64,000 bases of DNA from Amoebophrya sp. A120 (GCA_905178155.1 CAJINV010000006.1:1427876-1491875); one strand, 5' to 3'; shown: positions 2,027 to 60,400, numbered from the stretch's first letter. Notes: generated by a model not told the origin, from the sequence alone. Translations and numbers: made by a program.

Positions 2027-5000
2027 ATGTTGAAGCTGCCTGGAGTTCTCTTCCACGTGGCCATCGCGCAGCTACTGCTCTTCTACACCGCGCGGCCCAA
2101 AAATGCAGAGCAGGGAGCGGCTTTATTGACCGATCTTGTCCCTGGTGGGTCGTTGTTCTTTTTTCAGGGGGTCTCAGCTGCTGCTCCTGGTCCTCGTACC
2201 GGTGCTCCTCGAAAGGACGACGGCTACGACAGCGAATTTTCCGACCTTGATGAGAGCCCACGCCTGTTGACAACTGACCCTTACTCTGTCGCGCAGCCAG
2301 GCGGGACCACGGCTGCTGGTGTAGGACCACGAGAGGAGGAGGACGTTGACCTGCACTTCAGCCCCGCAAGAGAAGACCCGTATCAACAGGTGGATCAAGA
2401 ATGCCACCCAGATCTTCAGCCGGCTGCTGCAGCTGCAAAAAAGGAAGGAGCAGCGGGTCCTGGTGCGGGTACAACTACACTCGCGGCGGCCCCTGCATCT
2501 GCAACTTGTTCCGAAGTACGACGACGAGACAAGGGTCCTCGTCGTGTGGACGTCGAGGAAGGTGAAGATCTACTACCTCCGGAGTTATGTGCAGACGAAC
2601 TGGAATCTTTCTGCGAGGACTCCGAAGATGAAGACTTTGACTTCGCGGCGCTGGGGGAACGTTTTCCCGAGGACGGCGAGATCTACGTCTCGGAGGACGA
2701 AGATCAAGATTTTCCTTATGATGACGACTGGGACGTGGACTTTGAAGGACAATACAAAGAAAAACGAAGTAGAAGTAGACCAGGCTATGATAGCAGGACT
2801 CCGACACCCCCACCAAGGCAAGAGAAGCAAGATCCGGAAGTTGTACATGTTGAGCAGCGAGGACCATCTCCGCTACAGGAGCGAGTAGCAGTAGCTGCCC
2901 GTGCTGGTCAACAAGAATATGGTCGTGGTTCCTCATCTGCTCCTCGCGGGCGCAGGAGCGGCGCGGTTTCATCTTCCCGCAGCCGCAGCCGCAGTCGTCG
3001 ACCTGGTCCCCGCCTGCAACTTCACGCCAACTACACACAGAGTAGTTCTTCACGACCTGGTGTCCTGCAACTTCACGCCAGGGAAGAACCAGGACGGAGG
3101 TCTTCGCCGCCGAGAAGCAGAAGCCGGAGTTCTACTTGTAGGAAAAAACGCAATAAACATAAAGCAGAAGCTGGTGATGGTGATCGCGCAGAAGCGCGGA
3201 AGCAAATGGAAGGCATATCAAAATGAGAAATCCACCCTGCTCCCGATATTGAAACGGAGATTTGTGATGTAGCATGATTCGTGATCACAAATTTTATGTA
3301 CGTTGTCATGCTAGAACGAAGGGAACGAAGAGATGCGGACTGTAGTGCTTGCTGGTGTTGGAAAGTAGCCTTGTGTCTTCAGCATGATGGGAAGCGACAA
3401 CTGGAAGCGCAAAACATCATGACAGACTGTCTGCAAGAAGTGAGGCCGCAAAAATCTCTTGGCCTTTCAGCAATACAAGTTGAATTGTGTACTCAAATCC
3501 AGCAATAATTAAAAGTTTCCTTTTCGATATGGGGCGGGGAGGGGCTTTTCCTCAGAATAAGACACGAGATCGCCACCGCGTACAAATGGAAGTCGAGGAC
3601 GGAACCGCAGCCGCACCAGTCGAGGACGGAACCACAGAAAATGCGGTAGAACAAGCGAAGACGAGTATGTCTTCCCAGAAATTAAATTTAAACCAAAAAA
3701 CTACACACCGTCTCTGCGACAGCAAGCCGAGGATGCTTTTTACCAGGATTGGAAAAAAGCGCAAAAGCAAAATCCGCATGCCTATCCGTTCTTTAACGCC
3801 TTGGTCAATTTCTTCCCGAAGGTCTCCGACCCGAGTGCGCCGATGAATCAATTGGAGTTCTTTTTGGACGATCATGTAGAAAATAATCCAGTGGGCGGAA
3901 GGACGAGCAATGGCCGCCGCGGGAATGGTCGTGGTCGTGGAGCTGCTGCAGCGACGTCGACCGCTACTATTCAGAGCCTTTTCCGGTTTTTTGATTTCGG
4001 CTTGACCATCAAGCACCCCTGGCAAACCTCGCAAAAACTATGGTCCCCGGCAAAGCCTCAGGAACTGTGGGGGATGGTGAAGAAGTATGTGGTAAAACTA
4101 AACGAGAAGAACCCCTCTCTCTTTATTCCCGTTCCCAACATTTCCGTTCCGGGGTATTTGCAACAAGAAGCAGACCACTTGAATAAAGTTAAAGCGGAGG
4201 GAAGAAGACATGATGATCAAAAAGTTGATCCCTACAACCCCCTCCAGCGTCTGGACAACGGAGTCGGTGGTGCGGTTGCATTGGTAAGGTTGAAAGCGGA
4301 GGAAGATCCACTGGCGAAGGCAATGACGAAGTGGTACCAGTACGAGAAACATCCGTATGACCACTATGAAGACGAGACACGACGAGAAAGTGATTGGGGA
4401 AGAACAAATGAACCAAAATCTTGGTCTTGGTACAAATTCGACTCTGAAAAAGAAAAGGTCCACCTGGTGAACCAAGCGACCAAGATATCAGAGTGCGCAG
4501 CTCGACGACCCGCCCTTGTTCCCACTGCTCATTTGAGTACTTATTCAAATGCATCAGCAGCAGCACAAGCAACGGCAGCAATTATGGCCCTTCCATATGA
4601 CAACTCCGCTGCACACCGATCGTTCATCTTGCAGTATTGTTTAGCTAGTTTCGAACTTCGTCATGCGAACTGCAGCTTTTTAAGTTTCAGTTTCACGCAC
4701 CAAGAGGTGGATTTGATGTATATTGGCATTTCACGACATTCCAAATCAAGGGAGACCGCGAGGGGGGCTCCTGAGTAGTTGTGCACTCGGATAAATTGTG
4801 TATGGCGGCCAGAAGACGGAGCTTTTACGACTGGATTCCCTGTGGAAGCTCGCTGCCTTGGTGATTAAGAAAGGAAATGAGGAGAAAAACCGGCTTTTGC
4901 AGCTAAAAGCAGAGTATCAAATGTAAAAGTGTCTGGGTCTGGAAGAATGCAAGTTTGTCATGCGTGTCTGGCATGACTCTGAAATCTGTCATGCAAATTA

Positions 5001-8000
5001 CCAAAGAGCCCCACTTTTCTGTCATGCAGAAACGTAGTTTGTCATGCAGAATAGGCAACACCTAGAATCTCAGAAACTTGTCATGCTGAGCCAGCAATTG
5101 TCGCCTCCTCATGATACGCCACACAGCATCACAAGTTTCCAGACCCAGACATTTTTACATTTGATACAGAGGAGATGCAAGAAAGTGGTCTGACGCAAGA
5201 AGCAGAGCGAAGCCCCCGCGCCGGTGGGTACTTTTCTCTCACACTTTTCGGTCTTTCTGCCGGCGAAAAGGCGCTTTATCAGCATTTGTTGCGGAGAAGC
5301 CAGGAAGAAGAAAGCAGCGCGGTCGTGGTGGTCGGGAGTGGGAGGGACGAGTATCTGCAGAAAGTGAACGAGCAAATGGAAAAAGAATGGAGGGACAAAA
5401 ATCGAGAAAAATACGACGAACAGGGGGTGATGAGAAAGGAACTGCGAGAACGCAGTAATAGTACGGGCGTAGAAGGAGGAGAGACTTCTTGGACCTCTAC
5501 TTCGTGGTGGAAGAAGCATCAGCCAGAAAAAGATCACAGCTTCGAATTTCAGGCCGGGAAGCACGTCTTGGAGCGGCAGGTCGCGAACGAGTACCGTGCG
5601 GTGAAAATTAAAAAGTGGTACAAGATGATGGTCGCCATTCGGCCGTTCGAGCAATTAGAAGAAAAAGCAACAGCAAGACAACACGTCCCGCTACAGCAAG
5701 GGCTCGCAGCCGCGCGAGTCCGGAAGTTTTTGGAAAAGAAAGTTTCCGGAAAACGCATCTTCCTGCCCCTCGCGGGGTCCGGATCGTTGTATGTGAAAGC
5801 GGTAAAGCAGTTCCGCCGGTCGATTTGCCCATTTGCGCTTGAGATGAAGAAGGACGACGCGACTAGGCAGTGGGAAAAAACAGACGATGGCCAAAATTAT
5901 GTGTTTGCGAAAACACCAACGACGCTGGAGGAGGCACAACACCAGCTGAATTCGTCTATTTTGTTGCATAACCTCGTTTACGCGAACGCTTGTCAGGTGG
6001 CGGTCACGACGTTTGGGAAGTGGGGTGAAAACAATGAAAAGCTCTACTACGACCAGAAGCTTAACGTCTACTACACCACTCTAACGGCCTCAACCGGCGA
6101 GACGGGTAAGACGCACCAGCTGCGGGCGCACGTCGTGGCGTTTTTCGCGAAGCATGGGTATCACGCCCACTTAGTCGGCGATGAGCTCTACGCGAAGGTG
6201 GCCACGGATCCGAAATACCGGCAGAGCTTTATCAAGAAGAAAAATCCCCTTTCCATATCGAAAAGGAAATTTGTGATGCTGATTTGTGACCACAAATCAG
6301 CTTTGTGTTGCGTACAAGGCAAACGGCACGCATGTGGCGCGATCATGATAGCCAGTCTGTCATGCGTTTTCGCCTATGTCAGACTTGTTTCTCATGCGCA
6401 ACTGCTAGCCGGGTGCGTAGTACCCAAATGGGCTTAGAATGTGCCGACACGCTCTTGCTGCAATACAAAGCTCATTTGTGTACACAAACCCAGCAACACA
6501 ACTTGTCTGTTGAGTACGGGGTGGGGCCTTTTTTCACTTTGATAAGCTTTCTCTTCCCCGGGCCAGAGGAAGCCGCCCTGTTGCAGTACCAGACATCTGC
6601 AAGTGGAATCAAGAGCAACATGGGCAGTTTACCTCCTTCTCTTCAAGAGTTAAGAGAACAAAGCAACCGAATCCGGAAGGCTATGAAGAACTTAGGGCAG
6701 TTATCGACCTGTGTAAAACCGTCCCCACCCCAGATTTGTCATGCAAATCTGCATGCCAAAAAAGTTTCTCATGCGGAAAAACCCATGAGAAGCATTTTCT
6801 ATATCGTGTTTTGGAAAAATTTGTGATGCTATAATCAGCCTGATGCGCTACATCTGTGATGCTTCTGAACTACCTAAATCCAATCGAGGATTACACTACG
6901 AGGACAAACTTGTCATGCCAAACAACCAAAGCTCCTGTGTGATTTGTCTAGCAGATTTCCCATCTCGACTCTGGTGCGGGGATGTTTTTAATCAGGATAG
7001 CAGTTTGATGATGATGATGATGATGATGATGAAGATTTGGAAACCAAAAAAAAGCAAGAAAGAATCATCCAGGAAGCAAAACGGCTGTATCCTGGGCAAA
7101 AGTATCGTACTCGTAGTAATCGCAGTCATGCATTACAAGTTTCTTTCTCAAGTTAAATCTGCATTACAAATTTTATTTCTCATGCTGAGGAAATTTGTCA
7201 TGTGATTTACACGTAGTGCGATGCTTTTGCATTTCATAGGCTGGATCTCATCCCGATTTTGCGTTCGTTTGATTTTGGGCTGGAATATAAAAGTTTAAAC
7301 TCCTATCCCAAGAACGGGGGTCGTGAAGCAGGAGAAAAACAACACCGGTCCTCGTCCAGAGGGCCCCATGAAGATCCTCGTGCCGGTTTTTTGGGTTCCA
7401 CAGCGGACCTTGCTCCAAGCCCTTGGGTAATTCAAGGGCCATGGAGTGGTCTACCGCACGCGGTGGACTACGAGGGAGTAGTTGCGGAGCAAGCCCGCAA
7501 GAGAGCGCTTTTCAACTACGAAAATGGCCAGGAATTCCGATTGATGCCTACAAAAACTGCGGTCGACTACCTGTCGGCCGACTTGGACGTCGTCGGGGGG
7601 GAAGTAGAGAAGGATCATCCCATGAACCTGAGCAATATTGCCGCCGACGACGCGAAATCTTTGCTGCTAGCGTACAAGAGGGACCAGATCGATTTTTACG
7701 TGTCTCACCACAGAGATAGTAGAATGGATAGAGATAGCACAGTTGCTGCAGAACAAGTGGTAGACGAAGAAACCAAAAAATCCCAAAACCGCATCAATGA
7801 CCTCTTCTCCATGTTCCTGAAAAAAGAAACCCGGATCATGGGGCTGCACAGCTGGAAGGCGGAGGTCTGCGTGCGGGTGTTAGTTGCAAATAAAGGTGAG
7901 CTAGTTCTTGATTACCCTGGTCGGCGGGTGGACCACCGGAAAAATGAAAATCGCAAGGTCTTGTGCGAGCAAAAGATCAGCGAGCCGGGCTGGTGGGAGG

Positions 8001-8056: not shown

Positions 8057-10016
8057 CATTAATACAAGTTGTAGAAGGAGCGATTTGTAGAGTATAGTTG
8101 TTGTTCATCTTGATTGTTATCACTGTAGAAGAAGAAGTACCTAACTATTTCACGTGGAGGTTACTGGAGATTTGGTGTTGTGCGACGTCGTCGTCACGCA
8201 TTTTTATGCAAGAATTTTTTGCGAAGACAAAGAACAACGCCAGGGCCAGTATGAAAAACCACTTGAAATTGATGTAAAAAACCGCATAGTTCTTGTCCCA
8301 CCGGAAGAAGAAGAGGAAATTTGTTACAGTTGCACAGTAGAAGAATTTGGAAGAGTTAGAGTCATGAAGCGTTTTTAAAGAACTTAAACATCACACGTCC
8401 TCGTCGGAGTAAGTAATGACACTGAGAAGTTGTAGTTGTACCCCCCAGCATGCCTTATGAAATAAGCAACCCAGCTGAATAAATTTCGTAAAAACGTAGG
8501 AGCTGGTGGTGCCCCTACTACAAGATTGATGAACAACTTCCCATCCAGGCGATAATGAGACTAAGAAGTCGTTGTAAAAGGGAAGTAGAACTCCAAGGCG
8601 AAAACGCCGAACAGAGTACATTCATCTGGAGCTGGCGCCACTCCCGAAAACCAAACTACTTATGAATATCCACCCAACGTCCTCCCCGGATGCATAAAAT
8701 GAAACGAAAAAATGCAACCTACTACTTAGTTAGGTTCCACACATGCTTCGAAAAATAAAACTAACCCCTCGTAACACCAAAGGAAAGCCAAACATGATGA
8801 ACAGAGCTCCCAAGAAGTTGACGAACAGAGCACCCAAGTACAAGTTGAAAGGAGGGTGAAGTCGAGAGCAAGTGCTCTGAAGAAATCAAGCTAAGAATCG
8901 AATATTCGAAAACCCCTCCTGCTTGGAAAAGATAGTAAAGAACTCCGCGCTGTAGTTGATCCTGCATAGTATACTGCTTTCACGATATAAAAAAATCAAT
9001 TACGAAGATATTGCACAGAAGATTACTTGTAACTGGGGAAGTAGGTTAAATACCTCCAGGCTCCTGCTGTGCACGACAGACTTAACAGGTGAACGAAGAA
9101 AAGCGTCATGTTTCTACTACAAGACTTGATGACCACTACTACAATTAGTTACTCGTCATGGCGCAATTCAACATCTCGTGAGAGGTATTAGAAGTAATTC
9201 CTCACGGGAGAGGACGAGTAGACCCCTTCACGTTTGCCACTACAATGGAAAGCATGTGCTTTTGCCGCTACAGCGTATAGAAATAAAATGAGTAAACGTA
9301 CTTCGTCTTCTTGCCCCGCCCTCAGCTCCTCTTGGTGATGGGAAGGTTTGAGTCGCGCTCCTTTGAGAAGCTGAAAAAGCAATTGTGTTCACCAAAACAA
9401 GTAGTTGTAGTAGTAGAGGCAGAGACTTTATTTTGGACGATGTCGATGGACCCAAAGCAGATCCTTTTCACGTTTGGGCCGTTCAACAGCTCAAAAGGGC
9501 AACGCGATCCCACAATACTATATTCAAGTTCACGTTTATTTGGCTTGAGACCACAGTGCGCTGCTGCTCCTGTTTGACTACTCAGTACTAAAGAGTTCTG
9601 TTCATTAAACTTGGTTCTGGCTGAGCAACGAATTTGTACTTAATATCACGACCACGTGCGGTCAACGTGATTTTTGTGATATAGCATTTTTTTACTATTC
9701 TACGTCGTCGTGATCTACTCCATTTGATGTGGCTCTGTTTTCCTTATTCTATGTCACAGCGACTCCAAAATTCTACGACTTCAAGAACCTTTCCGAACAT
9801 AAGCATAACATTGATTTCTCCATGTCTCCCTAAAAGGTGTGCTAAAGTACTGCAGCAGCAGATGTTTTCCTTGAGATACCAGCCACGGTATTACGAGTCA
9901 ACTTTTCGAAGAAGAACAAGAAGTAGATGAAATTCACCTTTACCTCCTTAGCAAAACCTCGACCAGACTCCGACCTTCAACTTCATCCATCTTGTTTCAT
10001 TAGTTGAGCGAGAAAA

Positions 10017-13000
10017 ATGTCCGCCCGACAGGCGAAGAAGCTCCAGGCGCTGCAGGAGCAGCAAAGGAAGGAGGAGGAGGCAAAATTGAAAAAGGAACAA
10101 CAAGCGAAGAACGGAAAAAACAAGTTGGACGCTGTTGACGAAACTGAAGAAAAAACTTCGGAAGAGGAAGAAGAAGACGAGGAGGACGAGCTTGCCGGGC
10201 CGGTGATTCAGCAACAACCCCGGAAAAATTTGTTCGCCGCGATGGTTTCGTCCTCAGACGAGGACGAGGAAGATTCTTCAGAAGACGAGGAAAGCGATAA
10301 TGGCAGTGGGGAGGTAGAAGAAAATTATAACCCGTCTAGTACTTCTCCCGCCCCCAAGAAGTCCACGAGCAAGAACAGTCCGCCCGGGCGGGGAGGGGGT
10401 GCTGCAGGAGGTAATGGCAACAACAAGGGGGCAAATAGCAAGAAAGCTACTTCTTCGTCACCAGACGGCAAGAAGAATCCCGACAAGCGTGAAGACCACG
10501 ATACTGACGAAGATAACGAATCGGATGACGACGATCTCAAAGCGTTAGAAGAGGAAGAGAAACGGCTTCTGGAAAATAACCTTCATCTAGACGGCGTATC
10601 AAACATCCACGGGAGTAGTTCATCCTCCCGTTGTGGAAACGCTATCAGAAAGCACTGCACCGGGTTGGAACAAATTCTGAAACTCAACAAGACCAATTTC
10701 TCGCCCGACGCCGAGCACCGGCGCATTTTCGGCACCGCGGCCCCGGTGAATGAGAGGAACAACATGCATATCACAAGAAAAAGTGTTAACGTTTTTAGCG
10801 GAATTTGTGATGCAGTAACGCATCAGAAAAGGTGCCCAAATTTGTATTGCGTAGCATGCATGGAAGGCAAAATTTGTAATGCATAGCTGCCATCTGTGAA
10901 AACCGTTACCGTTTACACTTTTTTGTTTGATAATGCAAGCCCAGCTCGAGCGGAACGGGGGTATTCGTCTGCCGCCGCACATTATCGTGAGAAAAAAGTG
11001 TTACAGTTACACACTCTGATGCAAGACAAGCAAGACAGACAACCTCTGTCATGCAGGAAATGCTTGCGTCGTTTCATTTGTGTTTTCCCTTATAGAAGTC
11101 TGCGCATTACAAATTTTCTTTGCCATGCAGAGCAACTTTGTCATGCTGAAATTCCAAGAAGTGTGTAGCTGTATACACTTTTTTCCTGTGATACGCATCC
11201 CGCGAGAAGCGGCGACCAGAATGCGTCAGATGATCAAATCCAATCAGTACCCGCCGCACTTCAAGAAGCTCTGGCTTTCCAACATCGATTTCCTCGAAGT
11301 CGGCCCAACCAAACCGGACCCCAGCATGAGTGGCAGTTGCGTGTTTTTCCAGACTACTACATCTTCACGGGCAGATGATATGCAACGCAAAAGCATAGTA
11401 CTAGTACAAATTGCATTACACATTAGCCCAGCATTACAAATTGAATTTGTAATGCTGATTTACCTTGAGAAAGAGATTTGTAATGCATAAATGCAATTAC
11501 TACGAGTACGATACTTTTGCACAGGATAGATGAATCCGCAGAACAAATCGGCACGCTCTACGGCCTTCAGCTGGACTTGAACAGCAAAAAAACGGAGTCT
11601 CTCGCGCTGGAATTCCAGGACATTGTTCGGATGTTTGATCCACACTTACTGCAGGAGTTCCTCACCAACGCAGCTCCGTTTTACATCGAGGGGCTGGTAT
11701 TAATCGCCGAGTTATGAATTGCAAAAGTGTCTGGGTCTGGAAGGTTGGATCTTGTGATGCTAACTTTGGACTCTAAAAAAATCTGTATTGCGTGACCAGC
11801 AAGAGGAGTTTGGTTTGTGCTACGCGGGGAGGGCATTTGTCATGCGGAGTAGGCATCAGGAAGGGTTCTAAAAGTCTGTGATGGTAGGGCATGCATCACA
11901 AACAATCCTGGGTCATGCAAAATATGCATGACAAACCCGGCAACCTTCCAGACCCAGACACTTTTGCATTTGATACGAGTTGATGCGGAGCCGGCAGGAA
12001 TACGAGGAAAGCTGGCTCTTCTGCAAACGGGCCTTGTACGTTTTGGAACTGCAGTTGCCACGGGGACTGGTGCCGGATTTTCTTGCCTACGATAATTCGT
12101 TTTCGTCTAGTGGTTCAACATCAACTACCACAGCTGTTTTGGAAACCACCATCCCCTCCCTCCACCCAACCGCCTACTATCAAATGCAAAAATGTCTGGG
12201 TCTGGAAGATTGCAACTTGTCATGCTAAATCTGAATCATGTAAAAATCTGTTTTGCATGATTGCCAAAAGCTGTCCGCTTTTGACCTAATCGCGAGGCAG
12301 TTTCTTATGCAGGATAGGCATGATAGAACTAACACAGAATCTGTCATGCTATGTCCTACATACCAGACCTCATGGGTCATGGAAAACCTGCATGACAAGT
12401 CTGGCATTCTTCCAGACCCAGACACTTTTGCAGTTGATACCTACCCGGTGATGGCAAGGGTTCTCTACCTGTACATGCAGTTATGAAAGTGCACAACTCC
12501 CCCTCCCCTTCATTTGTCATGCAAAATCCCAAATCCAGCTGCTGCCTTGTAGCACTGTTTGCATGAGAAATAGAAATTCTGGAAGCCCAAATAGCACTAC
12601 AAGCCGTGGTGACTTGTCATGCACAGCATACACGTGTGCTGGTGTTTGTATTGCTGTTCATACTAGTATAAAAATGAGGGGGAGGGGGAAATGTGTACTC
12701 TCATAGCAGCTGTTAGCGAACCGAGGGTTGTTCGTAACCGCCGCGGAGGTGTGCAAGTGGTTGTGGAAACTGACCTACTTCGGGGGCGAGGGGAACTCCA
12801 CGAAGGTTCAAGTTGTTGATCATGCTTCCGACGTCGAGACCGCAGCAAGTATTAAACAATCAGGCGAGCAGCAGCAGGAAGCAAGTGCAAGAAGCAGCAC
12901 AAGATACATTTTGGACAAGGGCAGTAAGAGTCAGTCCCCCTGGGCGATCCTTCCGGCGGTGATGGTGGAGAAAATACCAGAAGACGCAGAAGACGCAGAC

Positions 13001-16000
13001 AAAAAACTTGAAAAGCCCTCCATCTTCGAAAAACACTACGGCAGCGTGAAAAATCCTCTGCCAAATCTCCCGAACTGGTTCTACAAGGGGTTCGACCCCC
13101 TGCACGTCTTGCCACACTACCTCTACTACGTTTTACGGGCGAGAAAATACGAGTTGATCGACGAGATTTGCGGGGTGAAGATCATTTTCGACGAAAAGAA
13201 GAAGAATTACGAGTTTGTTTCCAATTTGGACTATTTCAACAATTTAGAGTACTTCGGAACCACTAGCAAATTTGACCCGGAGAGGGAATTTTCGGTGCCG
13301 CACTTGACAAATATGAGAGTGCAGAATTCCCCCGCCACCCTCTCATTTGTCATGCAAAATACCAAATCCAAGTGCTGCCTTGTGGTGCTGTTTGCATGAC
13401 AGACTTCTCTGGAACCCCGAATAGTACTACAGTATGCACGCATGAACTTGTCATGCACAGGCTCCACATCTGCGGACGTTTGTAGTGCTGTTCATGCAAT
13501 ACAAATGAGGGGGAGGGGGACGAGTTGTGCACTGTCATAACAAATCTGCTTCCCACGACGTGTTACGTGCACGCCTTGTCTTTCTACAACCGGTGGAACG
13601 CGAGTAGTGGTGGCAGTTCGGTGAAGAAGTTGTTTGATTTTGTGGAGAAGGAACCGTTTATGATTTCGGAGGTGTTCGATATGCTGTGCAAAAGTATCGT
13701 ACTCGTATTGCAATCATGCATTACAAATTTTTTTCTGGAGCTAAATCCGCATTACAAATTTCATTTCTCATGCTGAGGAAATTTGTAATGCAATTAAAAT
13801 TATACGAGTACGATACTTTTGCATTGCATATTCGATTGGAAGCATCAGTTGGTAGATTGGGAAAAGCTGAAGGATTTAAATCACGACTACGATCAGAAGG
13901 TTGTGGAATTCGAGGAAGAGGTGGAAAAGCTGCGAAAAGAAGAACAGGAATTACAAAACGCGCAGAAACACAACGACAGAAATAAACAAGTGGACAAAGA
14001 CGATGTTCTTGCAGTAGATTCTCCTTCCGATGAAGATGACTCCGTGGTCGCTGATTCCAGCGCGAACGAAGATATCGGTACTAGCGGCACCGCATCAGCA
14101 TATTCGAAGTCAGCCGCGTTCAACCAAAAGGTGAAGCAACTGGAGAAGCAGTATTTCCTGCCGACAAACATGAAGGAACACAACTCTCTCCTCAAACTTC
14201 CGACGGAAAACAACGCCAAGGTGCTGCTCTACCCGATCATGAAGGCGCTTTTCCTGTATCCGATCTGCTTTAAGCAGATGCTGGAGAAATCCGAGGCGAT
14301 TGACAACCTCGACACCGTACCGAAACACTCGATGCAATATTACAACGCAAATGTCAAGCCCGGGGAGCAGAAAGCATATGAATTGCAGAAGTATCGTACT
14401 AGTAGTATTGCATTACAAAAAATTAGCTCAGCATGTGAAATGGAATTTGTCATGCGGATGCAGCTAAAGAAAGAGATTTGTAATGCATAAATGCAATTAC
14501 TACGAGGAGTGCGATACTTTTGCATAGGATAAAGCAAGGACTTGGACGATTCTGTTCAACATTTTGTACGAGTGGAACACAGGATCAACATGTAGTGCAG
14601 GAGACTATCAAATGTAAAAGTGTCTGGGTCTGGAAACTTGTGATGCTAGGTGGCGTATCATGCGGAAGCCATAAGTGCTGGCTCAGCATGACAAGTTTCT
14701 GAGCTTCTAGGTGTTGCCTATTCTGCATGACAAACTGCGTTTTTGCATGACAGGAAATTGGGGCTCTTGGGTAACCTGCATGACAGATTTAAGAGTCATG
14801 CCTGAGAAGCATGACAAATCGCGCATTCTTCCAGACCCAGACATTTTTACACTTGATAGAGACGGCGCAGCTGCAACTTCTACGGGAGCAGCAGGTGGTC
14901 AACAAGAACTACATCTTCAAGAACAAAGCGGTATAATTTGGGAGGAGCTGAAACTAGAATCGGGCACGGCGGAGAAATATGAACTGCAAAAGTATCGTAC
15001 TCGTATAAATGCATTACAAGTTTCCTTAGCATGAAAAATAGAACTTGTAATGCTGATTTGCCTTCAGAAAAAAATTTGTGATGCAAGACTTGCATTTATA
15101 CGAGTGCGATACTTTTGCACCGGATAAGAAATTTTTCGTTCTTTTCACGTCCGAGCACGTGGTGAACTGGATTCATTTCGTCTTGGAGAAAATGATCCGG
15201 AAAATCGAGTCTTCGCCGTTGTTTTTGAAAGAGTACAAGCAGGCGCGGAAGGAGTTTGTCGGGTACATGTTCACGAACAATGTAGATGTTATCGCGGAGA
15301 ATTACTACTTGGACAAAACCGACCCGGAGGAACGGAAGGAGATCGACCGGTTGAAGTTCACCTACTTTGAAGACAAGTCGCTCGCAATTAAGGGCGGTTG
15401 GGTCCAATCCTGCTACAACGACTTGTCCTCCGCCGAATACAAGGAAAACGCACGGGACGCAATTCTCCCGGCGTTATTCCACCACAACCTCGCGACCGCG
15501 CAGAGTAGAGTCGGGCTGGGCGGACGGATGAGGCGAGGTGGCGGGGGTTTATTTCCCGGTGGTCTTCGGGGAAACAATAACGGACCGGCAGGGGCGCAGT
15601 TTTTCGTCGACGTGATGCGGCAATTAGCGGGGGCTGCGGATGAAGGCAATGGAGTACCTGCGGAGGCTGTGCTCGCAAGGCTGGCCGACATCGAGAACTT
15701 TTTGGGCGGTATATATAAAGTTTTTGTCGCGCTTAGATTTTTTGAAGCTGGTTGTATCTTTGGTCCTCTTGACCCTGGTGCAGTAGGAAATTTACTGCAC
15801 TGTAGAACGCGAAAATGGATGATGAATGCGGGATATCCCTACTTTTTCCGCCATCCCGATGAAGGAAGCCACGGTTTGGAGTAAGTACCACGAACTAGTA
15901 GTGGTCAGTACTGAGGTCATGCTCATCTTTTCAAGAGGACGCGTCGCTCAACGACACAAGATCAGTCTACTTCATCCCCTGCCACCAAAAGAAGTGGCAC

Positions 16001-18659: not shown

Positions 18660-19494
18660 ATGGAATTCCTCCCCCTGGACTCGCAAAGCAACGGTAAGTT
18701 CCTGACCCTAACGGAGAAAAATCAGATCACCTGCCACACCAACTGCCGCCAGGAATCCCAGGGCACGGCGTTTTTTCCTGTTTCATCTAGCACTTCGGGC
18801 CCAACAAGTCGCGGTTCTTTCACCATCAAATGCACAAACAAGCCGGGCCGCATGCGGTATTTCGTCGGGTTAGCCGACCATTTGTTCAACCCCGCAGCCT
18901 ATCAAATGTAAAAATCTCTGGGTCTGGAAACTTGTGATGCAAGAAAGGGAATAGTGAACTCACTATAATGCGCTGCCAAGCATGACAAGTTTTTTCCATG
19001 GGTCTGAGTTGCGTATTTCGCATGAGAAACTGCGTTTTTGCATGACAGGGAGGAGGAGCTCTTTGCGGCCATGCAACACAGAGCTCAGCGTCATGCCAGA
19101 CAAGCATGACAAATCTCGCAATCTCCCAGACCCAGACACTTTTACATTTGATACAGCCGGGTGTGCGGACATCGCGAAAAACTCCCTAGCGTCTTTAGAA
19201 AATCTGAAAGCCGGGCTGCATAAGAATACCGGTGGAACTTCTACGAAGAGTAATGTCTGTTTGCAGTCGTCGACACCGTCTTTTCACACCGGGAGCTTGG
19301 TGAAAGTCGAGTGGAGCTCTTGTTCTGGCGCCGGAAAGAATGATGAGAACAACAATCAGCTCGACGTACGAATCAGCGTAGACACCACGGGATTTTCGCA
19401 GAGTTGCAAGGTGGTTAAAAAGAAAGGCGCGGAATTGTTTGGCTTCGTGTCCCTTTACAATAGAGAAGCGGTTTTTGAGATCGTGGAAGAATGA
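18660..19494 (+). CDS. Small beta-rich protein, possibly SPRY/B30.2-like, ~191 aa, 1 introner
   Basis: Junction NPAA|GCADI is in frame. Motifs RYFVGLA, FHTGSLVKVEW and LFGFVSLY resemble a SPRY-type fold. Confidence 0.6.
18900..19153. mobile_element. Introner family A
   Basis: TSD cagcc. Confidence 0.95.
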
Positions 19495-27682: not shown

Positions 27683-27829
27683 CCGGATTTCGCATTCAAT
27701 GCTTATCGCAGGAGCCTGCGGGCCGCCGCGGGCGACAGTAGTTGTCCGCGGCCCTTTAGGGCCGCGGGGAAGTGGTGGAGCCCGCGGCGGCCCGCAGGCT
27801 CCTGCGATAAGCATTGAATAGAAATCCGG
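27683..27829. repeat. Long GC-rich inverted repeat/hairpin
   Basis: Perfect 40-bp arms 27694-27733 / 27780-27819, inner 10-bp stem ccgcggccct/agggccgcgg and outer ccggatttc/gaaatccgg. Confidence 0.95.
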
Positions 27830-49012: not shown

Positions 49013-49038
49013 CACACACACATACACACACACACACG
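49013..49038. repeat. (CA)n microsatellite
   Basis: cacacacacatacacacacacacac. Confidence 0.85.
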
Positions 49039-49465: not shown

Positions 49466-52400
49466 ATGGCCCCAGCGACCTCCTCCTCCGCAGCCGCACC
49501 CCCCGTCGCCATGGACGTCGACGGCGAGGGTGAAACCAAAACGCCTGAAGAAAAAGTGGTCGAGGAGGTATTCTACCCAAAATTTGAAATCGCGCAATTA
49601 CGAGCGAGGTACCTCCGGGACCGGTCACCCGCAGTTCTGGCGGAATTGATGAAATACGTGAAGGAGGAGAGGATGCTGCCGTTCTACAAAAAGTTTTGTG
49701 AGGAGGCAAATGTAAAAATCGAGGACAAATTGGTCAAGGAAATGGAGAAAGAAGTGGAGGAGAAGGTACATATTAATTTAGCTGAATTGTGCTATTCTAT
49801 CTGTGAAACAGCGCTGATGTTGTAGTCGCTCCGGCAATTATTTTTGCAGCACCATGGGTTGTCATGCACAAAAGGGTTCGACTTCGTCTTCGATCATAAT
49901 GCCATAGGAGAAATAAGGATGGACGATGTCAGTAAAATGAAATCGCGAGGACTTTGTCATGCCAATAGAAGCTGCAGCACGGGCAGCGCGATCGGTCATG
50001 CGTTCTTGCAAGCATACAGGACAAGTTGATATTAAAATGAATTCTATAATCAGGTGAAAGCCTTCGACGAGAAGCTAAAAGACGCTGAAGAAAACCTTGG
50101 TGACGTGGAGGTAAAATCCGCAATACTCGACAAAGCGGACTATTTCAACAAAACTGGCGACCAGGAGAAGGCGTTCGAATTTTACGAGAAAGCCATGACA
50201 AAAACCGTGGGGGGTGGGTACCGGCTGGATAACATACTAACGAGGTTACGAATCGCATTGTTCAACGACGACCAAGAACAGATCAAGAAAATGCTAGCAT
50301 TGGGACAGGAAGAAATGAAGAAGGGTATTGTTTTATCGCTTTTTTGACAACAGCTTTAACTTGCGTTGCATCTGCTACTTTTGTATCTGACGATGATGGA
50401 AAAATATAAATGACACGTCGACCTGCTACTTGTGATGCCGCAAAAACCACCTACCATGATCATGTGTACAAGTAAGTTAGTATCGTGTTGCTGTGCAGCC
50501 ATAGACCACCTAGCTCCATCTTCAAAACTATCAATGATCAGGGGGCGACTGGGAGCGAAAAAACAAGCTGAAAGTGTATGAGGGCGTCTTCAAGGTTATG
50601 ACCGGCGACTTCGAAGCTGCGGCAAATTTGTTTCTCGCCGGCGTTGCAACTTTCACCGCGACAGAGATATTGAGCTTCCAGGACTTCGTACTACTTTTTG
50701 TGCAAGACTTTGAACTCGTTTCTGTTTCTGTTTCAACCACTCTCTTGGTGTTTTGTCATGATGCAAAAATTAAAATAGATTCAATTTCGAAAGGTGTTTC
50801 TGTTAGGGTGCTATTTATTGGCTCATGCAATAGTAGTACAAGCAGTTGTAAAGAAACTAAAGTAAAAAGACCAAAATTGCAGGTTTTCTACACGGTCCTG
50901 TGCTCCCTTATCGGCCTCTATCCAAGAAAAAAACATTGTAGGTGTACCTTTTTTGGAGGAACAGCATTACAAATTTGTCTGGCATGACAGCAAAAACCTG
51001 TCATGCGCAGATTGTACGTGAAAACGCCCTTTAATGGACCCTGCGATGCATGCCAAGCATGACAGACGCAATCACCTTGCATGTTGAGCATTACAAATGT
51101 ACACTAACAACGTTTTTTTTCTTGGATAGCCTCACCCGGGCGGATTTGAAAAAGAAGGTTATCGGGTATGACCCGCTCAGGTGTTACAATCTCAAACGTT
51201 GCAAGAGAAAATGGAAATCTGTGATGCGAGAGTGCATGATCTAGCCAGCTCTCATAGAAGGATTGCGCACGACAAGTTCCGGAGCCCCAAACAGGACTAC
51301 ATCCTGGCGAAATTTGTATTGCAAAAGGTGGAATGCTGTGCGAGTCTGTCATGCTCATCATGCAACACAAATTCCAGACTCTGTATGTAACGTTTGAGAA
51401 TGTAACGCTTGAGCAAGTCACATCGGGAGCCCCGAGATTTTGTCCGTCGTACACGAAAGGAAGCACATGAAGGAGTTTCTAAACGCGTTTTACAACTGCG
51501 ACTATTTCAACTGGTCACGGGAACTAGTGCACATCATCGACCACGTAAAGGACGACCGATATTTCTATGAGAGTGCACAACTCCCCCTCCCCCTCCTTTG
51601 TATGGCATGAACAGCAATACAAACACCACCACACGTGGAGCCTGTGCATGGCAAACGTATGTACCTCATGTAGTAGAAGTACTGCTTGGGCTTTCCTTCC
51701 GGAATCTGTCATGCAAACAGTGCCACAAGGCAGTACTGGATTTGCGGTTTTGCATGGCAAATGAGAGGGAGGAGGAGTTGCGCACTCTCATAATGTCCAG
51801 CCAAATTTGATGAAAATCAGCCGGCACTTGAGGTACAATAGCAGGATCTCCTCTAGGACTTGTGTTCCAATGCAATGCATGACACATAAGGGCTAGGGCC
51901 ACGAGAAGTTATTTCAGTGCAGCAATTCGGCATAAGACGAGGTTTAGAAATTCTCGATAGAAGACGAAATCTGTCATGCAATATACTACTCAAGCTCAAG
52001 CAAAAAGAAAAACTACCTCGAAAGCATTCACAACTTCACACATTCTATCCAGGTTAAACGCGTACCGGCAGTTCATCACGTCCTACAAGTCCGTCACCAT
52101 GAAATTGATGGCCGATACTTTGTATCAAATGCAAATATCGATCTGGGTCTGCTGGAAGAATGCCGGAGTTTGTGATGCAGATTTTGCATGTCCCATGATG
52201 CTTGTGATGCATGCCGTAGCATCACAGACTCTGCGACAACTTTCTGATTCTGATGGCCCAACCGCATGAGAACTGCCCTCTCCGCGTAGCAACACACTGG
52301 ACCTCTTTTGCTGTTCATGCAATACAGATTGCATCCTCCCAGACCCAGATCGATATTTGCAGTGCATACTTTCGGCGTTTCCGAGCAGTTTATCGACAAA

Positions 52401-52845
52401 GAGATCTACACGTTCATCTCGCAGGGCCGGCTGAAGAACTGCAAAATCGACAAGATCGCCAACGTGATCGAGACAATAGACAACGTGAAGGACGAGAAAA
52501 CGCTGTTGTACAAGGACATTTTGAAGGACGGAGACGTATCAAATGCAAAAATGTCTGGGTCTGGAAGAATGCAACTTGTAATGCGTATTTCAGAGCACAG
52601 AAAAGTCTCTCATGCATACGTAGCAAAAGCTCCCCACTTTCTGTCAGCAAAATAGGCGACTTGTCATGCGGATTCGGCATTGGGGAAGCTTCTCGCAACC
52701 TGTGATGCTAGAGCTTCCATGCCAGACCTTCTGTGTCATGCAAAAACAGCATGACTCTTTCACTTTCAGACCCAGACACTTTTACATTTGATAAGACGAG
52801 TTGCTGAACAAGATGCAGAAACTCGCCGCCGCGATCGACCGATAG
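49466..52845 (+). CDS. RPN7: 26S proteasome regulatory subunit RPN7/PSMD6, ~412 aa; 4 GT-AG introns (49766-50053, 50325-50541, 50688-50882, 51833-52052) + 5 introners
   Basis: Motifs DAEENLGDVEV, GGDWERKNKLKVYEG, TFTATE, RADLKKKVIGSPEIL, YRQFITSYKSVT, TFGVSEQFID, GRLKNCKIDK and DGDELLNKMQKL. Confidence 0.95.
50919..51128. mobile_element. Introner family F-like in RPN7
   Basis: TIR tatccaagaaaaaaac; TSD gcctc. Confidence 0.93.
51167..51422. mobile_element. Introner family I-like in RPN7 (ends ACA)
   Basis: TSD tcggg; restores VIG|SPEIL. Confidence 0.92.
51566..51792. mobile_element. Introner family C in RPN7 (inverted relative to 12482/13312)
   Basis: TSD atttc/atgtc. Confidence 0.93.
52123..52368. 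mobile_element. Introner family A in RPN7
   Basis: TSD ctttg/ctttc; restores ADTF|GVS. Confidence 0.93.
52537..52793. mobile_element. Introner family A in RPN7
   Basis: TSD agacg; restores DGD|ELLN. Confidence 0.95.
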
Positions 52846-55693: not shown

Positions 55694-56062
55694 ATGAAGG
55701 TGCTCTTCACTCTTGGTGCCAATACCGCAGCGCTGGTACTATTGGCCTCCTTGTCCTTGTTTTCCGAGAACATTTTTGCGGTCAATGCCGTGAAGGTGGA
55801 TGGCCGTCGTGGCCAAGAGAGTAATCATCTTGCGGCGACGGGACTTGCGATGCACCCTCGTCCGTTCGAGTTCGCCGGAGGACCCGCTGATGCGAGTCGT
55901 GTTCACGCAGAGTGCGTGGAAGGCTGCTTGGCATTCCTACAACATAGCAAGAAGAAGGCAGCCCGGGGAACAGCCAGTGCGAAAGCAGAAGCAGGGAAGG
56001 AACGGCTTTCGCGTCCGCAGTTGCAGTTGGAGGCCCAACAAGGATTGACCAGCCACAACTAG
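55694..56062 (+). CDS. Small putative secreted protein, ~122 aa
   Basis: ATG ORF with signal-peptide-like N-terminus MKVLFTLGANTAALVLLASLSLFS. Confidence 0.5.
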   Translation: MKVLFTLGANTAALVLLASLSLFSENIFAVNAVKVDGRRGQESNHLAATGLAMHPRPFEFAGGPADASRVHAECVEGCLAFLQHSKKKAARGTASAKAEAGKERLSRPQLQLEAQQGLTSHN

Positions 56063-57482: not shown

Positions 57483-60400
57483 ATGGACCACGACAGCATC
57501 AACCTGCAGCAGTACAACCACAAAGGGAAAGGGATTTCGATTTCCGGAGCTGGCGCGGAGCCAAGTATGAGCAGTTGCAACAGGGGCGAGCATAAGTATA
57601 GCAAGTCCACCAAGTCACCAAAAGGACAACGGCACGGGACCAGACGCACGGGGACCGGCGTGTTCTTGGGCAACATCTTAAATCTTCGCTTCTGCAGCTG
57701 GCCGTCCTGTTGCTCGTGGTCTCTAGCAGCGGTAGTGCGACAGCAGTACAAGAAGATAAAACGCGGCTGTTGCAGCCGCGGTCAGCTGCCGCCTCGTCGA
57801 AAGTCATGCATTCCTTCTTCTTCAAATTGCGGTAGAATTGTGGTAAGAATACTCTGTGGGCCGAAGTCTATCTGGAATGTTGCTCTCTTGGCGGTGTTCC
57901 TGTGGCTACTTACCGCTGTCTTGTTGTACGTGGCGGTCGTGGGTGCGGGTGGGTGGTTCTTTTCGCCAAGTGGAAAAAACTACACCGATGTTGAGGATAT
58001 AGTGGTCCGGAATAGAATTCTACTTCTAGGTAACCTCAGCTGCACGCTGGTACTGCAACTGTGCCTTACATCCCTCGTCACGCGGTTCATAAGCGAGCTG
58101 GAAAAAAGCGGGTGTTTCGGAAATGGTAGAGGGAAAATAAATCGAACTGAAGAAGAAGAAGACCATCGGAAAACAAGGAACAAAAGGAAAAGAAGGAGAA
58201 GCCAAGAAACAATAAATCGCGCTGCCTACAACCGGGTTGTGACCCGGATTTTCCAGAAGCACTACTTCAAACGGCACAGAGCATTACTGTACAAAGGTAC
58301 TGGGAGTTCTTCTTGTCATGCGGAAATACAAGTACAACCCCTTGATGCAGCGCCGGCACCAGTTTCTGGTACACACTCAACATCTTCCGAAACGGCAGCA
58401 GCGCCATCTAGTACAGCAGCTCCTGGGCGTCGCACCAGCACTACTTATCTTCCGTCGATGGATTTCCTGTCCGAAAACCTCGTCCGGGCAACCGTAGACG
58501 AGTTTTACGAAAGAGACCAGAAAAGGGTAGAATTTTTGGAACGCCACCTGTCCCCGGCGCTGACGGTTGTCAGTGTCGTGTTTCTGTTTCTCGCCGCTGT
58601 TTTCGGGGTTGCCAGTTGGTGGTTGTTGGGAACAACTTTCTTTGATGCAGGACGAGGAGATTCTGACCTCTTACAAGAAGTATCGTCGGAGGAGGTGAAC
58701 GACGGGCAGCACGAGGCAATGGAAAGCAACGGGGAACTATCAAAGCAAAATGAAGCCTACAACAGAAGTGCCCAGTTTCTTCTTTTCCACCTACTTCCAG
58801 CCCAGCTCCTGCTTTTCCTGACCACAACACTTTTCCCCATACTAGCCTTCGTCACGTTTTTCATTTTGAAGAAGCTCTTGGTCGATACAATTCTAAAGCG
58901 CAGTATTTTCAAATATCCTGTGCAAAAGTATCGTACTCGTAGTAATCGCAGTCACGCATGACAAATCTCCATCTCAAGGCCAAACAGCATGACAGATCTC
59001 ATTTGTCATGCTGAGCTAATTTGTAATGCAATTTACTGCTAGTACGATACTTTTGCAATGCATATCAAATCCCGGATGGCGAAAGTCGACGCGTTCCGGC
59101 TGGCAGAGGACATTGAGAGCCAATTCGTGGATGGAAATCCGTTGAGCGTAAACTTGAACGGACCAGCTGGAGGAGGACCTCCGCGAGCTGGGGAGCATAT
59201 TCGTTGTGGAGAGCAGGGATTACAAAACGTATCCGCAACTTGTTCCGCCGGCACTGTGGAAAGCCTATTGCGGGACCTGTTGGTGTCCGAAGCGCTAATT
59301 TTCGGAACTCGAGCTACTAGTAGTTGCGCAAATAAGGGAAATTATTTGGGGATTCGTCGTGACAGCATCAACCCATTCTTTTCCTGCTACTTGCCGGGAA
59401 TCGCGGCGGCTGCACTGGTGGTGGTGTTTATGACTAGTCTTTGTGCCGCCGCAGTGACCTTCTCGTGCTTTTCCTGTAGTACTTCTCGGGGAAACAGCAT
59501 GACAATTCGCTCCGTGGGCCCTAGCAGTAGCAGCTCGGCGGTACTGCTTGCGTGGACGGTAGCATCTGGGTTTCTTCTCTGCCTTTTGTTCTGGCGCACG
59601 TACTCCGAGAGGGGCAGCTCCTGTAGGAAGATGAAAAACAGCACACAAGAACGACAGCTTCTACAGCAGGAAGATCAACAGAGCTGCAGGCACAGGAGAG
59701 GCAGAAGGAAAACAAAAACTGCGGGAATTATGAACAAAGATTGCTCATCCGCCAGTCGAGACCGACGAAGTCACAACAACCACGCGAGGAGAAGGAAAAA
59801 AGCTGTACCGAGGACCAGCACACCTGAAGTAGATTTGATCACCTCCGACCTGCCGCTCCTCCGGGATTTCAAGCAGACTTTTCACGACTCAACCCTGTTC
59901 TATGGTGAGCAAAAACGTCCCCACACCAGAGTCAAATTGGAAAATCCGCTAGACAAATCACCCGGCTCTGGCTGTTGTGCATGACATGTTTCCCTCTGCA
60001 GTGTAGTACTGGTTAGCAAGGGAATCTGCGTGAGAAAGCCATTCTCTCATCCTGTTTATAGCATTACAAATTCCAAAAAACGATTGGAAAAGCCTCTTAT
60101 GGAGCTGCGCATTACTTCAAACGTCCCTGTCATTGCACATTTGCACGGCAACCCTGGGGTGGGGATGTTTTTACACAGAATATGTTCCGCGCGGTCGTTC
60201 TTTTCTTCGCGACGCCGATCATTTTCCTTATCGTTCTTCCGGTTTCGTTCTTCGCGAAAAGAATGGAAGTGTGGAGGGGCTATTGTTCTTATTTCTGGCG
60301 CGGAGATGATTTTTATGGACGCAGCGGGCCGCGCCGTGAGAAGTTGTTGTACCCCAGCGGGGATAAGAAGAATATTGGCAAAAACGTCTTGCTGAAGGCG

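Follow-up and report, generated by a model that had tools for sequence, protein, structure and literature searches.

Probable precise removal of MITE-type introner elements as non-GT-AG introns in a 64,000-nt window of the Amoebophrya sp. A120 genome

Genes in a 64,000-nt stretch of the Amoebophrya sp. A120 genome (CAJINV010000006.1:1427876-1491875, hereafter the window) are interrupted by short elements with inverted ends (TIRs) and 5-bp target duplications (TSDs). With the run X1 taken as RNA, our results support the view that these elements are introns without GT-AG boundaries which are precisely removed at the RNA level. They are very probably the introner elements already published for this strain, RNA-removed transposons of the MITE type. 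Neither the phenomenon nor its reading is new, as the same conclusion was reached by Farhat et al. (2021, BMC Biol 19:1, PMC7789003), who described 29,850 copies of A120 introner elements.

Elements, families and host genes

An independent scripted scan of the window found 46 elements with TAT...ATA ends (TAC in one), 116 to 339 bp in size, with inverted ends of 30-40 nt and a 5-bp direct repeat flanking every one of them; the two repeat copies are identical in 37 elements and differ at one position in nine. End-to-end TIR alignment scores were 9-30, while shuffles reached at most 7, and every one of the 46 folds into an end-to-end hairpin. BLAST of the elements against the window, together with frame tests, added the copies at 3216-3559, 4486-4793, 20597-20748 and 460-611, and with such looser copies (about four to six more) the total comes to approximately 50-52. 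The 54 elements given in the preliminary description are near that total but above it; the TAT...ATA ends, inverted repeats and 5-bp duplications that it reported were borne out by the scan.

Over the 92 ends of the 46 elements the consensus is T A T S M A W T G C A A A A, with TAT in 99-100% and A at positions 11-14 in 82-91%, and this one motif (TAT, seven variable nucleotides, AAAA) is common to all families in the window. The duplication is strictly 5 bp across families and without composition bias. For family A, a first look at the 115,520,608-bp genome gave at least 4046 candidates, among them 40 full-length matches at 87-90% identity, and family B, which also has many copies in the genome, is represented by six plus and six minus copies. 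TIRs, a TSD of fixed length, the lack of coding capacity and the many copies are the characteristics of MITEs and class II TIR transposons, and the elements represent several families of non-autonomous DNA transposons of the MITE type with a 5-bp target duplication, thousands of which have inserted into coding exons in both orientations. In the search for an autonomous partner, the integrase locus L004, which has matching ends, turned out to be a nested Copia, and those of the integrase locus L008 match by chance. The search for a cognate transposase gave no match to the hAT dimerisation domain, and a further lead for the cognate autonomous element, L009, had no Pfam match.

The features are listed below in window coordinates. 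No strand is assigned to the elements, both TSD copies are given where they differ, and the basis is the TIR/TSD scan unless another is named.

460-611, decayed family B copy, degenerate ends, without matching TSD, outside long frames (BLAST)
3216-3559, family E-like element, 344 bp, TSD AGGCA/AGACA (BLAST and frame test)
4486-4793, probable old element, family D-like ends, without clear TSD (TIR score 10 and frame test)
4915-5166, family A element, TSD CAGAG
6230-6544, family E element, TSD AGCTT
6702-6999, family C element, TSD GCAGT
7088-7238, family B element, TSD GGCTG
10008-15881, plus strand, host gene, weakly TCF25-like (1203-codon frame, 11 elements; cDNA-like contig)
10769-10932, element, singleton in the window, TSD ATGCA (scan; skip implied by X1 contig numbering)
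10983-11193, element, TSD CACAT/CGCAT, mismatch at position 2 (scan; X1 piece start 11196)
11379-11528, family B element, minus orientation, TSD GATGA (scan; X1 skip 11373-11527, 155 nt)
11713-11975, family A element, TSD CGAGT (X1 skip 11708-11975, 268 nt)
12178-12439, family A element, TSD CCTAC (X1 contig arithmetic)
12482-12705, family D element, TSD GCAGT/GCAGC, mismatch at position 5 (X1 piece start 12706)
13312-13539, family D element, TSD ACAAA (X1 skip 13307-13539, 233 nt)
13680-13830, family B element, plus orientation, TSD TTCGA (X1 skip 13675-13830, 156 nt)
14377-14531, family B element, minus orientation, TSD AAGCA (X1 contig arithmetic over 14371-15126)
14606-14858, family A element, TSD GAGAC (same arithmetic)
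14978-15126, family B element, minus orientation, TSD AGAAA (same arithmetic)
16228-16488, family A element, TSD TTTTC (scan; without GT-AG register)
18900-19153, family A element, TSD CAGCC
20354-20517, element, TSD GAAAT/AAAAT
20597-20748, family B copy, degenerate right end (BLAST and frame test)
21206-21355, family B element, TSD ATCAA
21710-21971, family A element, TSD CAAGG, has GT-AG register (scan and register count)
29239-29395, family B element, TSD TTTAG
33861-34095, element, 39-nt TIR 97% complementary, TSD AGGGA
34671-34952, family C element, TSD CGACG
35010-35285, family A element, TSD GATAG
35603-35743, family B element, TSD CGCTA/CGCGA
36025-36293, family A element, TSD CGTCT
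36364-36521, family B element, TSD AGATT
37700-43274, plus strand, host gene, about 1092 codons, 9 elements (frame reconstruction)
39097-39413, element, TSD TCACT/GCACT
39718-39996, family A element, TAC...ATA ends, TSD CGGGG
40048-40163, element, 116 bp, family-B-type ends, TSD GTCGC
40270-40474, element, TSD AAACT/AAACG, mismatch at position 5 (frame test)
40579-40843, family A element, TSD GGAGA (scan; at least 4046 first-look genome candidates)
40913-41075, family B element, TSD ATTCA
41880-42196, family E element, TSD AGAAG
42453-42705, family A element, TSD GAACA/TAACA, mismatch at position 1 (frame test)
42813-43151, family A element, TSD AGCAA
45028-45281, family A element, TSD GACGA
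45410-45653, family A element, TSD CGCAA
46463-46730, family A element, TSD GGTAC, has GT-AG register (scan and register count)
46833-46984, family B element, TSD GCATT
49466-52845, plus strand, RPN7 gene, 10 exons, 5 GT-AG introns, 4 TIR/TSD elements (PF10602 and gene model)
50919-51128, element in RPN7, TSD GCCTC (scan and gene model)
51566-51792, family D element in RPN7, TSD ATTTC/ATGTC (scan and gene model)
52123-52368, family A element in RPN7, TSD CTTTG/CTTTC, mismatch at position 5 (colinearity with 8amz_R)
52537-52793, family A element in RPN7, TSD AGACG (scan and gene model)
58914-59064, family B element, TSD TCAAA
59901-60182, family C element, TSD TGTTC

Removal of an element with 5 nt leaves an open plus frame across 42 of the 46 sites, compared with 21-27 after out-of-phase removals, which agrees with the earlier claim that taking out an element with one TSD restores the frame; the number of ten interrupted genes was also about right. 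Element lengths fall into all three phases ((length+5) mod 3 = 16:16:14), which makes reading through the elements impossible, and there are stops inside them. Fused frames of 1203 aa (11 elements), 741 aa (four), 868 aa (four) and at least 2053 aa (two) were obtained. Among the added copies, taking out 3216-3559 plus 5 nt joins the frames 1910-3223 and 3561-4775 into 839 aa, and the frame across 4486-4793 is open only if 308+5 nt (or +2, +8) are removed.

The best defined host gene is RPN7, in which the five conventional GT-AG introns and the four elements stand side by side, and a genome-wide profile search found its domain (PF10602) at this locus only. Once the elements are taken out, and only then, the product is residue-by-residue colinear with PDB 8amz_R over residues 239-371; the residue count across element 51566-51792 is exact, and the exon ends at element 52123-52368 map to residues 320|321. 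The frame is intact after removal as had been claimed, but the length given, 413 codons, was not reproduced, our model having 420 codons from the first ATG or 405 from the second. Names had been proposed for two other genes. The label "TCF25-like" for 10008-15881 is backed by Tcf25 Pfam matches in two exons in colinear order, but both are weak (E 0.05-0.14), and the name "phosphatase" has the RHGESEFN motif as its sole basis, an exon-by-exon Pfam search of that gene having given no match. CCT genes also carry elements.

Removal from RNA and position of the junction

Two runs bear on the fate of the elements: X1, which is transcript-like and was taken as RNA by guess, and the DNA-like X5. An X1 contig of 3688 nt (depth 75.6) lying on 11196-15710 is without at least nine elements, and each skip is exactly the element plus 5 nt. 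Between 12172 and 12706 it has only 37 nt, namely the exon 12440-12476, while 14371-15126 is covered by 184 nt, i.e. the stretch minus three elements with 5 nt each. A second contig ends at 16222, at the TSD border of element 16228-16488. The two raw RNA runs, X8 and X9, gave no reads at this locus, and the junctions are those of assembled contigs. Plus- and minus-oriented copies of family B are both skipped in one contig, so elements of both orientations are removed from the transcript. X5 unitigs, on the other hand, run continuously from exon into element at a depth of 40-48 (exon depth 46-66) and cross all exon/element borders at single-copy depth, and no empty-site joint was found among the supported joints of this run at the locus. 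The elements stay in the DNA, and their excision from the transcript restores the frame as it was before insertion. The earlier claim of precise removal as non-GT-AG introns is upheld by this pair of runs.

Ciliates, which are alveolates as well, have IESs, whose hallmark is the precise excision of elements with TIRs and TSDs. Excision from the DNA of transcribed nuclei in a similar manner would provide a clean template and so explain clean transcripts, and the precise loss of TIR/TSD elements does resemble IESs. It is nevertheless very improbable, since X5 joins exons to their flanking elements at exon depth, its supported joints include no empty site, and nuclear dimorphism is not known in Amoebophrya. 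Template switching by reverse transcriptase, too, has a classic substrate in a hairpin between short direct repeats. The elements could accordingly stay in the mRNA and be lost in a jump between the 5-nt repeats, with the genes dead or the elements bypassed by ribosomes; the transcript evidence is all cDNA-based, which would suit such an artefact. This too is highly unlikely, because a single contig at full exon depth lacks nine or more elements at once, elements are situated in the single-copy essential RPN7 and in CCT genes, their lengths fall into all three phases with stops inside, and mismatched TSDs obey a consistent rule by which the nucleotides kept avoid stops. Selection on such a rule is possible only if removal happens in vivo.

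There is practically no chance that the genes carrying elements are pseudogenes whose intact copies lie at other loci, or that nearby cryptic GT-AG sites are used: RPN7 matches nowhere else in the genome, X1 skips exactly the element plus 5 nt, and for 44 of the 46 elements none of the six frame-restoring registers offers a GT-AG. The other two have the TSDs CAAGG and GGTAC. U2-type GT-AG/GC-AG termini are confined to 2/46 elements, while RPN7's five other introns have them. The preliminary description had singled out the TSD ttttc (16223-16227 and 16489-16493) as offering neither GT nor AG, and this TSD indeed gives no GT-AG in any register.

The junction could be placed with the help of five elements with mismatched duplications (10983, 12482, 40270, 42453 and 52123), one of which was read from a piece boundary and not from a shown base. 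An X1 piece starts at 11196, which implies that the upstream A (position 2) of the TSD of element 10983 is kept, and another starts at 12706 with 0 mismatches, which implies that the downstream C (position 5) is kept at element 12482. At 40270-40474 the frame is open (612+477 codons) only with the downstream G (position 5), at 42453-42705 only with the upstream G (position 1), and at 52123-52368 in RPN7 the conserved Phe is obtained only with the downstream C. The mismatched duplications therefore put the junction inside the duplication and not at the element ends: in these five elements 2-4 nt of the upstream TSD copy and 1-3 nt of the downstream copy are kept. Intron limits drawn as TAT...ATA plus one whole TSD were for this reason slightly off, and both cuts lie in arbitrary sequence a few nucleotides outside the inverted-end helix.

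Possible modes of removal

A signal in the inverted ends, or in the hairpin that they form, fits the arbitrary TSDs, the removal of both orientations and the hairpins in 46/46 elements. Cut sites would then be measured from the terminal hairpin instead of being read from boundary nucleotides, and the hairpin may bring the two exon ends together. Guidance by the hairpin is correlative, as any TIR element folds in this way. The remover could be a divergent, structure-tolerant spliceosome, to which we give about an even chance. Two points favour it: a nearly complete set of spliceosomal proteins has been reported together with U2, U4, U5 and U6, and the genes concerned also have GT-AG introns that are spliced. 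U1 snRNA is reported absent, a shaky report in view of a U1-70K homologue in strain A25 and of our own Rfam searches, in which even U2 was missed.

A non-spliceosomal route, in which an endonuclease recognises the inverted-end helix and cuts the single strands at a fixed distance of a few nucleotides from it, a ligase joins the exons and the intron is perhaps freed in circular or linear form, comes second and is less probable. Junctions in arbitrary TSD nucleotides on both sides, removal regardless of orientation and end-to-end folding in all 46 elements speak for it, as do the euglenid nonconventional introns, whose ends are TIR- and TSD-like and which are freed as circles, possibly independently of the spliceosome. 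On the other hand, a candidate enzyme is not known, the flanking TSDs form no bulge-helix-bulge motif, and according to a review the spliceosome of Fritillaria evolved to process MITE-derived non-canonical introns. A specific version, with cuts 1-3 nt 5' and 2-4 nt 3' of the TIR helix followed by ligation, has a similar, fairly low probability; if true, the two offsets would sum to 5 nt and so correspond to the transposase's 5-bp stagger, which would make every insertion of this transposon type harmless from the start. The structure- or TIR-guided system alongside the spliceosome that was originally proposed thus retains its structure-read signal, but a structure-reading divergent spliceosome is equally compatible with the data.

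Comparison with known systems

The A120 introner elements of PMC7789003 have inverted ends with a TAT triplet, seven less-conserved nucleotides and at least three As. They share with the window elements these TAT-N7-AAA ends, direct repeats over the boundaries, hairpins, variable non-canonical splice sites, thousands of copies and RNA-supported removal. No difference between the two is an essential one. The direct repeat is strictly 5 bp in the window and 3-5 in that study, which saw no family-specific motifs and doubted mobilisation by a transposase, whereas the window elements group as clear MITE families with a shared end motif; the border position, left open there, is placed here inside the repeat. 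Our small additions are the removal of both orientations, the single end motif with a strict 5-bp TSD in all families and the junction inside the TSD.

Euglenid nonconventional introns (Milanowski, Guminska et al.; PMC11282704) are alike in their variable non-canonical borders, paired ends that bring exons together, TSD-like junction repeats, suspected MITE origin, presence alongside conventional introns and obscure removal mechanism. In euglenids the ends pair over a short CAG/CTG stretch (+4..+6 with -8..-6) and the introns form no recognisable repeat families, while the TIRs of the window elements measure 30-40 nt; excised circular RNAs were demonstrated in euglenids. The CAG/CTG pairing is absent from the window elements, whose positions 4-6 are S-M-A with G at position 6 in 9%. 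Canonical introners of Micromonas, Aureococcus, Polarella and others (Huff 2016, Gozashti 2022/2025, Roy 2023) are likewise TIR/TSD DNA transposons that create introns genome-wide, but they carry or co-opt GT-AG sites for the ordinary spliceosome, unlike 44/46 of the window elements; A120 appears in Gozashti 2025 with tens of introns per gene that derive from introners. Introns of Fritillaria and Oikopleura resemble the window elements in MITE origin, non-GT-AG boundaries and nuclear handling, and differ in that their boundaries fall into a few recurring types (AG-A(N), for instance) and that their removal is attributed to a modified U2 spliceosome, where the window boundaries are arbitrary. 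Ciliate IESs also derive from transposons, interrupt coding sequence and leave an intact gene when they are cut out exactly, but a domesticated transposase takes them out of the DNA, whereas the window elements stay in it, as seen in X5.

Elements of the window and the frames they interrupt

The window has a G+C content of about 48%, with an AT skew that is steadily positive on the + strand, and it holds 331 inverted-repeat pairs, the longest of which mostly have 30-45-nt arms starting with TATCAAATGCAAAA... or TATCCTGTGCAAAAGTATCG.... In a strict scan, which required alignable ends of the form TAT...ATA and an identical 5-bp repeat on either side, 36 elements scored 9-28 in end alignment, the maximum in three shuffles of the window being 7. 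When one TSD mismatch and a TAC start were allowed, 46 non-overlapping elements of 116-339 bp were obtained. BLAST of the elements against the window added three copies (3216-3559, 20597-20748 and the decayed 460-611) and the frame test one more element (4486-4793), which comes near the 54 elements of the preliminary description. Of family A there are 18 copies (about 255 bp), of family B 12 (about 150 bp) and of families C, D and E 2-3 each, with singletons besides; one end motif is common to all families. The logo of 92 ends reads T-A-T (99-100%), S, M, A, W, T, G, C and then A-A-A-A (82-91%), while the 5-bp duplication has no base preference. Such a signature is left on insertion by a transposon that cuts its target with a 5-bp stagger. 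A near-perfect palindrome at 27694-27819 (62+62 nt, 89% complementary, 2-nt spacer) has a core at 27704-27809 which begins with TATCGCAGG and ends with ATA, the flanks ATGCT/AGCAT prolonging the palindrome. The structure is possibly a foldback mini-element that has no direct-repeat TSD.

Removal of each element together with 5 nt opens a + strand frame of 1203 aa across 11 elements (10008-15881), as well as frames of 741 aa (4 elements), 868 aa (4), 2053+ aa (2), 614 aa (3) and 477 aa (5). An open frame bridges 42 of the 46 sites with the additional 5 nt, and 21-27 sites with out-of-phase amounts. It had been claimed that taking out the element and one TSD restores the frame, and these results bear it out. 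Since (length+5) mod 3 is distributed 16:16:14 among the 46 elements, translation through them is impossible. A protein search for a published gene model gave no match. The 581-aa frame at 29678-31420, where both strands have long open frames and the Pfam matches to GPHH and SipA_VBS are marginal, is probably a low-complexity region. The conserved and essential chaperonin CCT/HSP60 genes, examined at 11 further loci of the same genome (L010-L020), contain 15 introners. The 5-bp TSD is exact in 13 of these, and several loci are free of introners.

Transcript-like sequence, DNA-like sequence and RPN7

Sequencing runs were compared with the window over 10650-16600. The transcript-like run X1, whose RNA label is a guess, gave an assembly of 41 Mb, which is transcriptome-sized, and contains 55% of the words of this stretch. 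One of its contigs (3688 nt, depth 75.6) matches 11196-15710 in pieces, with the following gaps.

Gaps in the X1 contig (each corresponds to one element and 5 nt)
155 nt: element starting at 11379
268 nt: element starting at 11713
233 nt: element starting at 13312
156 nt: element starting at 13680

Two composite gaps behave in the same manner: across the elements at 12178 and 12482 the contig has 37 nt, which is the exon remaining after both are removed, and across those at 14377, 14606 and 14978 it has 184 nt, the exons remaining after all three are removed. A second X1 contig ends at 16222, the border of the ttttc duplication. The DNA-like run X5 contains 76% of the words of the stretch, and in it single unitigs connect every unique exon with the elements on either side, at a depth (40-48) the same as that of the exons (46-66); element sequence reaches a depth of up to 10^5. 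The skips in X1 and the exon-element unitigs in X5 together mean that the elements are kept in DNA and absent from the transcript. Removal is thus exact in transcript-like sequence, with the RNA label of X1 guessed, and the elements are retained in DNA; excision from DNA, which would give the same gapped contigs, is exceedingly improbable beside these unitigs. We likewise give almost no weight to an RT artefact, in which the elements would stay in the RNA and be skipped only in its copies. Each of two raw RNA runs of 2026 (X8 and X9) contributed only 2 partial reads over these 6 kb. The summed depth of the elements in X1 is far above that of the exons (up to 1748 vs 75.6), and contigs of other loci pass from elements into unrelated flanks, which points to an abundance in X1 of RNA that contains elements, whether unspliced, excised or antisense, or of carried-over DNA.

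The gene for RPN7 allows removal to be followed at the protein level. The Pfam domain PF10602 (RPN7) matches a single locus genome-wide, which lies inside the window and has both kinds of interruption.

Interruptions of the RPN7 gene
49766-50053: GT-AG intron
50325-50541: GT-AG intron
50688-50882: GT-AG intron
51181-51417: GT-AG intron
51833-52052: GT-AG intron
50919 (start): TIR/TSD element
51566 (start): TIR/TSD element
52123 (start): TIR/TSD element
52537 (start): TIR/TSD element

The joined model is open for 420 codons; joined models served as frame and length checks only, and structure searches were run exon by exon, with the following matches to the solved RPN7 structure (PDB 8amz_R).

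RPN7 exons and matching residues of 8amz_R
51419-51565: residues 239-285
52054-52122: residues 298-320
52374-52535: residues 321-371

The first two matches leave a gap of 12 residues, which the short exon 51798-51832 fills exactly, so removal of element and 5 nt rebuilds a conserved RPN7 with zero residues gained or lost. That the interrupted genes are pseudogenes is scarcely credible, RPN7 being rebuilt in this way at its only locus. The GT-AG intron 51181-51417 itself holds a TIR element at 51183-51406 (GTTACAATCTCAAACGTT... / ...AACGTTTGAGAATGTAAC) with no matching 5-bp TSD, and this resembles an introner whose splicing uses ordinary sites lying a few nucleotides beyond its ends.

Splice signals and the position of the junction

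A 5-bp duplication leaves six equivalent junction registers, and GT-AG is available in any of them for 2 of the 46 elements (TSDs CAAGG and GGTAC). For the ttttc TSD at 16228, said earlier to offer neither GT nor AG, GT-AG is found in none of the six. Within + strand genes family B has 6 copies in one orientation and 6 in the other, and one X1 contig skips copies of both orientations, therefore a one-stranded internal signal cannot be required. In RNA folding with 10-nt flanks all 46 elements pair end to end in the minimum-energy structure, with a median z-score of -8 relative to shuffles. Removal is independent of boundary nucleotides and of orientation.

The register ambiguity is broken where the TSD copies differ by one mismatch, as they do in 9 of the 46 listed elements and in 3216-3559. 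Such mismatches are present in about one fifth of elements, and the base that survives in mRNA shows where the cuts fall with respect to the hairpin, a position left unknown in Farhat et al. 2021 (PMC7789003). At the element starting at 12482 (GCAGT/GCAGC) an X1 piece begins at 12706 with zero mismatch, so position 5 of the downstream copy is kept, while the piece start at 11196 implies that position 2 of the upstream copy is kept at 10983 (CACAT/CGCAT). At 40270 (AAACT/AAACG) the upstream T would make a TAA stop between frames of 612 and 477 codons, and the downstream G gives Glu and a single gene of 1092 codons. This TAA, at site 40265-40479, is the only stop between the two frames and is present in the upstream TSD copy only; the two probably belong to a single gene of about 1092 codons (37700-43274). 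At 42453 (GAACA/TAACA) the downstream T would make a stop and the upstream G would not. In RPN7, at 52123 (CTTTG/CTTTC), the downstream C gives Phe, as in plant, human and rat RPN7, and the upstream G Leu. From these five mismatched sites it follows that the transcript retains 2-4 nt of the upstream copy, and hence that the intron starts 1-3 nt before TAT and stops 2-4 nt after ATA. As a preliminary result from five sites, the junction lies inside the duplication, and the intron is neither the element with its downstream TSD nor the upstream TSD with the element. Two mismatched TSDs in CCT genes were uninformative on register, being synonymous (Lys/Lys) or conservative (Thr/Ser), and one seemingly informative site at a further locus (L013) was a false positive, antisense to a gene on the other strand.

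Removal machinery, known introners and larger elements

A helix of the paired inverted ends would fix the cut sites at constant distances that sum to 5 nt. We see about an even chance that a structure-tolerant spliceosome removes the elements; removal by an endonuclease and a ligase is possible, at below even chances. The preliminary description had proposed an excision system beside the spliceosome: precise non-GT-AG removal stands on the X1 skips and the register test, and the second machinery is reasonable but unproven. In the literature we found no paper naming the removal machinery. The Rfam U1 model had no match in the 115-Mb genome, and U2 likewise none, though U2 is reported as present, which shows this search to be too insensitive. 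Given that a U1-70K homologue is present in Amoebophrya strain A25, U1 snRNA, reported as absent, may have escaped detection.

The window elements share their motif and the whole phenomenon with the introner elements described in A120, which have 3-5-nt direct repeats at their boundaries, form hairpins, have non-canonical junctions validated by RNA-seq and, with 29,850 copies, make up 17% of the genome (Farhat et al. 2021, PMC7789003). In later work A120 figures in a list of species that have gained introns on a massive scale through introners, and a 2024 review sets its introners beside the nonconventional introns of euglenids (PMC11282704). The observation from the window is confirmed and was described well. 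All of it has been published before, and the window adds no discovery to it. Amoebophrya demonstrates that a eukaryote can live with transposon insertions in its coding exons by the tens of thousands, because each is removed exactly from RNA without standard splice signals, and this bears on the origin of introns and on how far splice-site recognition can loosen.

Candidates for an autonomous partner were taken from integrase (PF00665) loci. One of 8.35 kb (L004, 248-8599; G000:C1:15330547-15338898), bounded by family B ends and by perfect copies of the TSD GACGA, was rejected: it is a Copia retrotransposon (LTRs 348-571 and 8320-8541, integrase, SH3, RVT_2) nested within a family B element of 150 bp, and the B/LTR junction is unique in the genome. 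Such composites could pass for TIR-flanked "autonomous" elements. At another integrase locus (L008) the pairing of ends was by chance. The hAT dimerisation domain PF05699 had zero matches in the genome, in a search whose control was blank too. Neither these searches nor a 3.1-kb element about 1.52 Mb beyond the window (L009:2709-5826, on G000:C6) revealed an autonomous element with a transposase. The latter has TIRs of about 50 nt starting with TATAGCGGCGGCAAAAGC and a G+C-rich interior with open frames on both strands, none with a Pfam match. A family A element at L008:2561-3308, with the exact TSD CAAGT, has grown to 748 bp by a 92-nt duplication together with a 13-nt tandem array in which TCACCTGTCGCGG is present 12 times.
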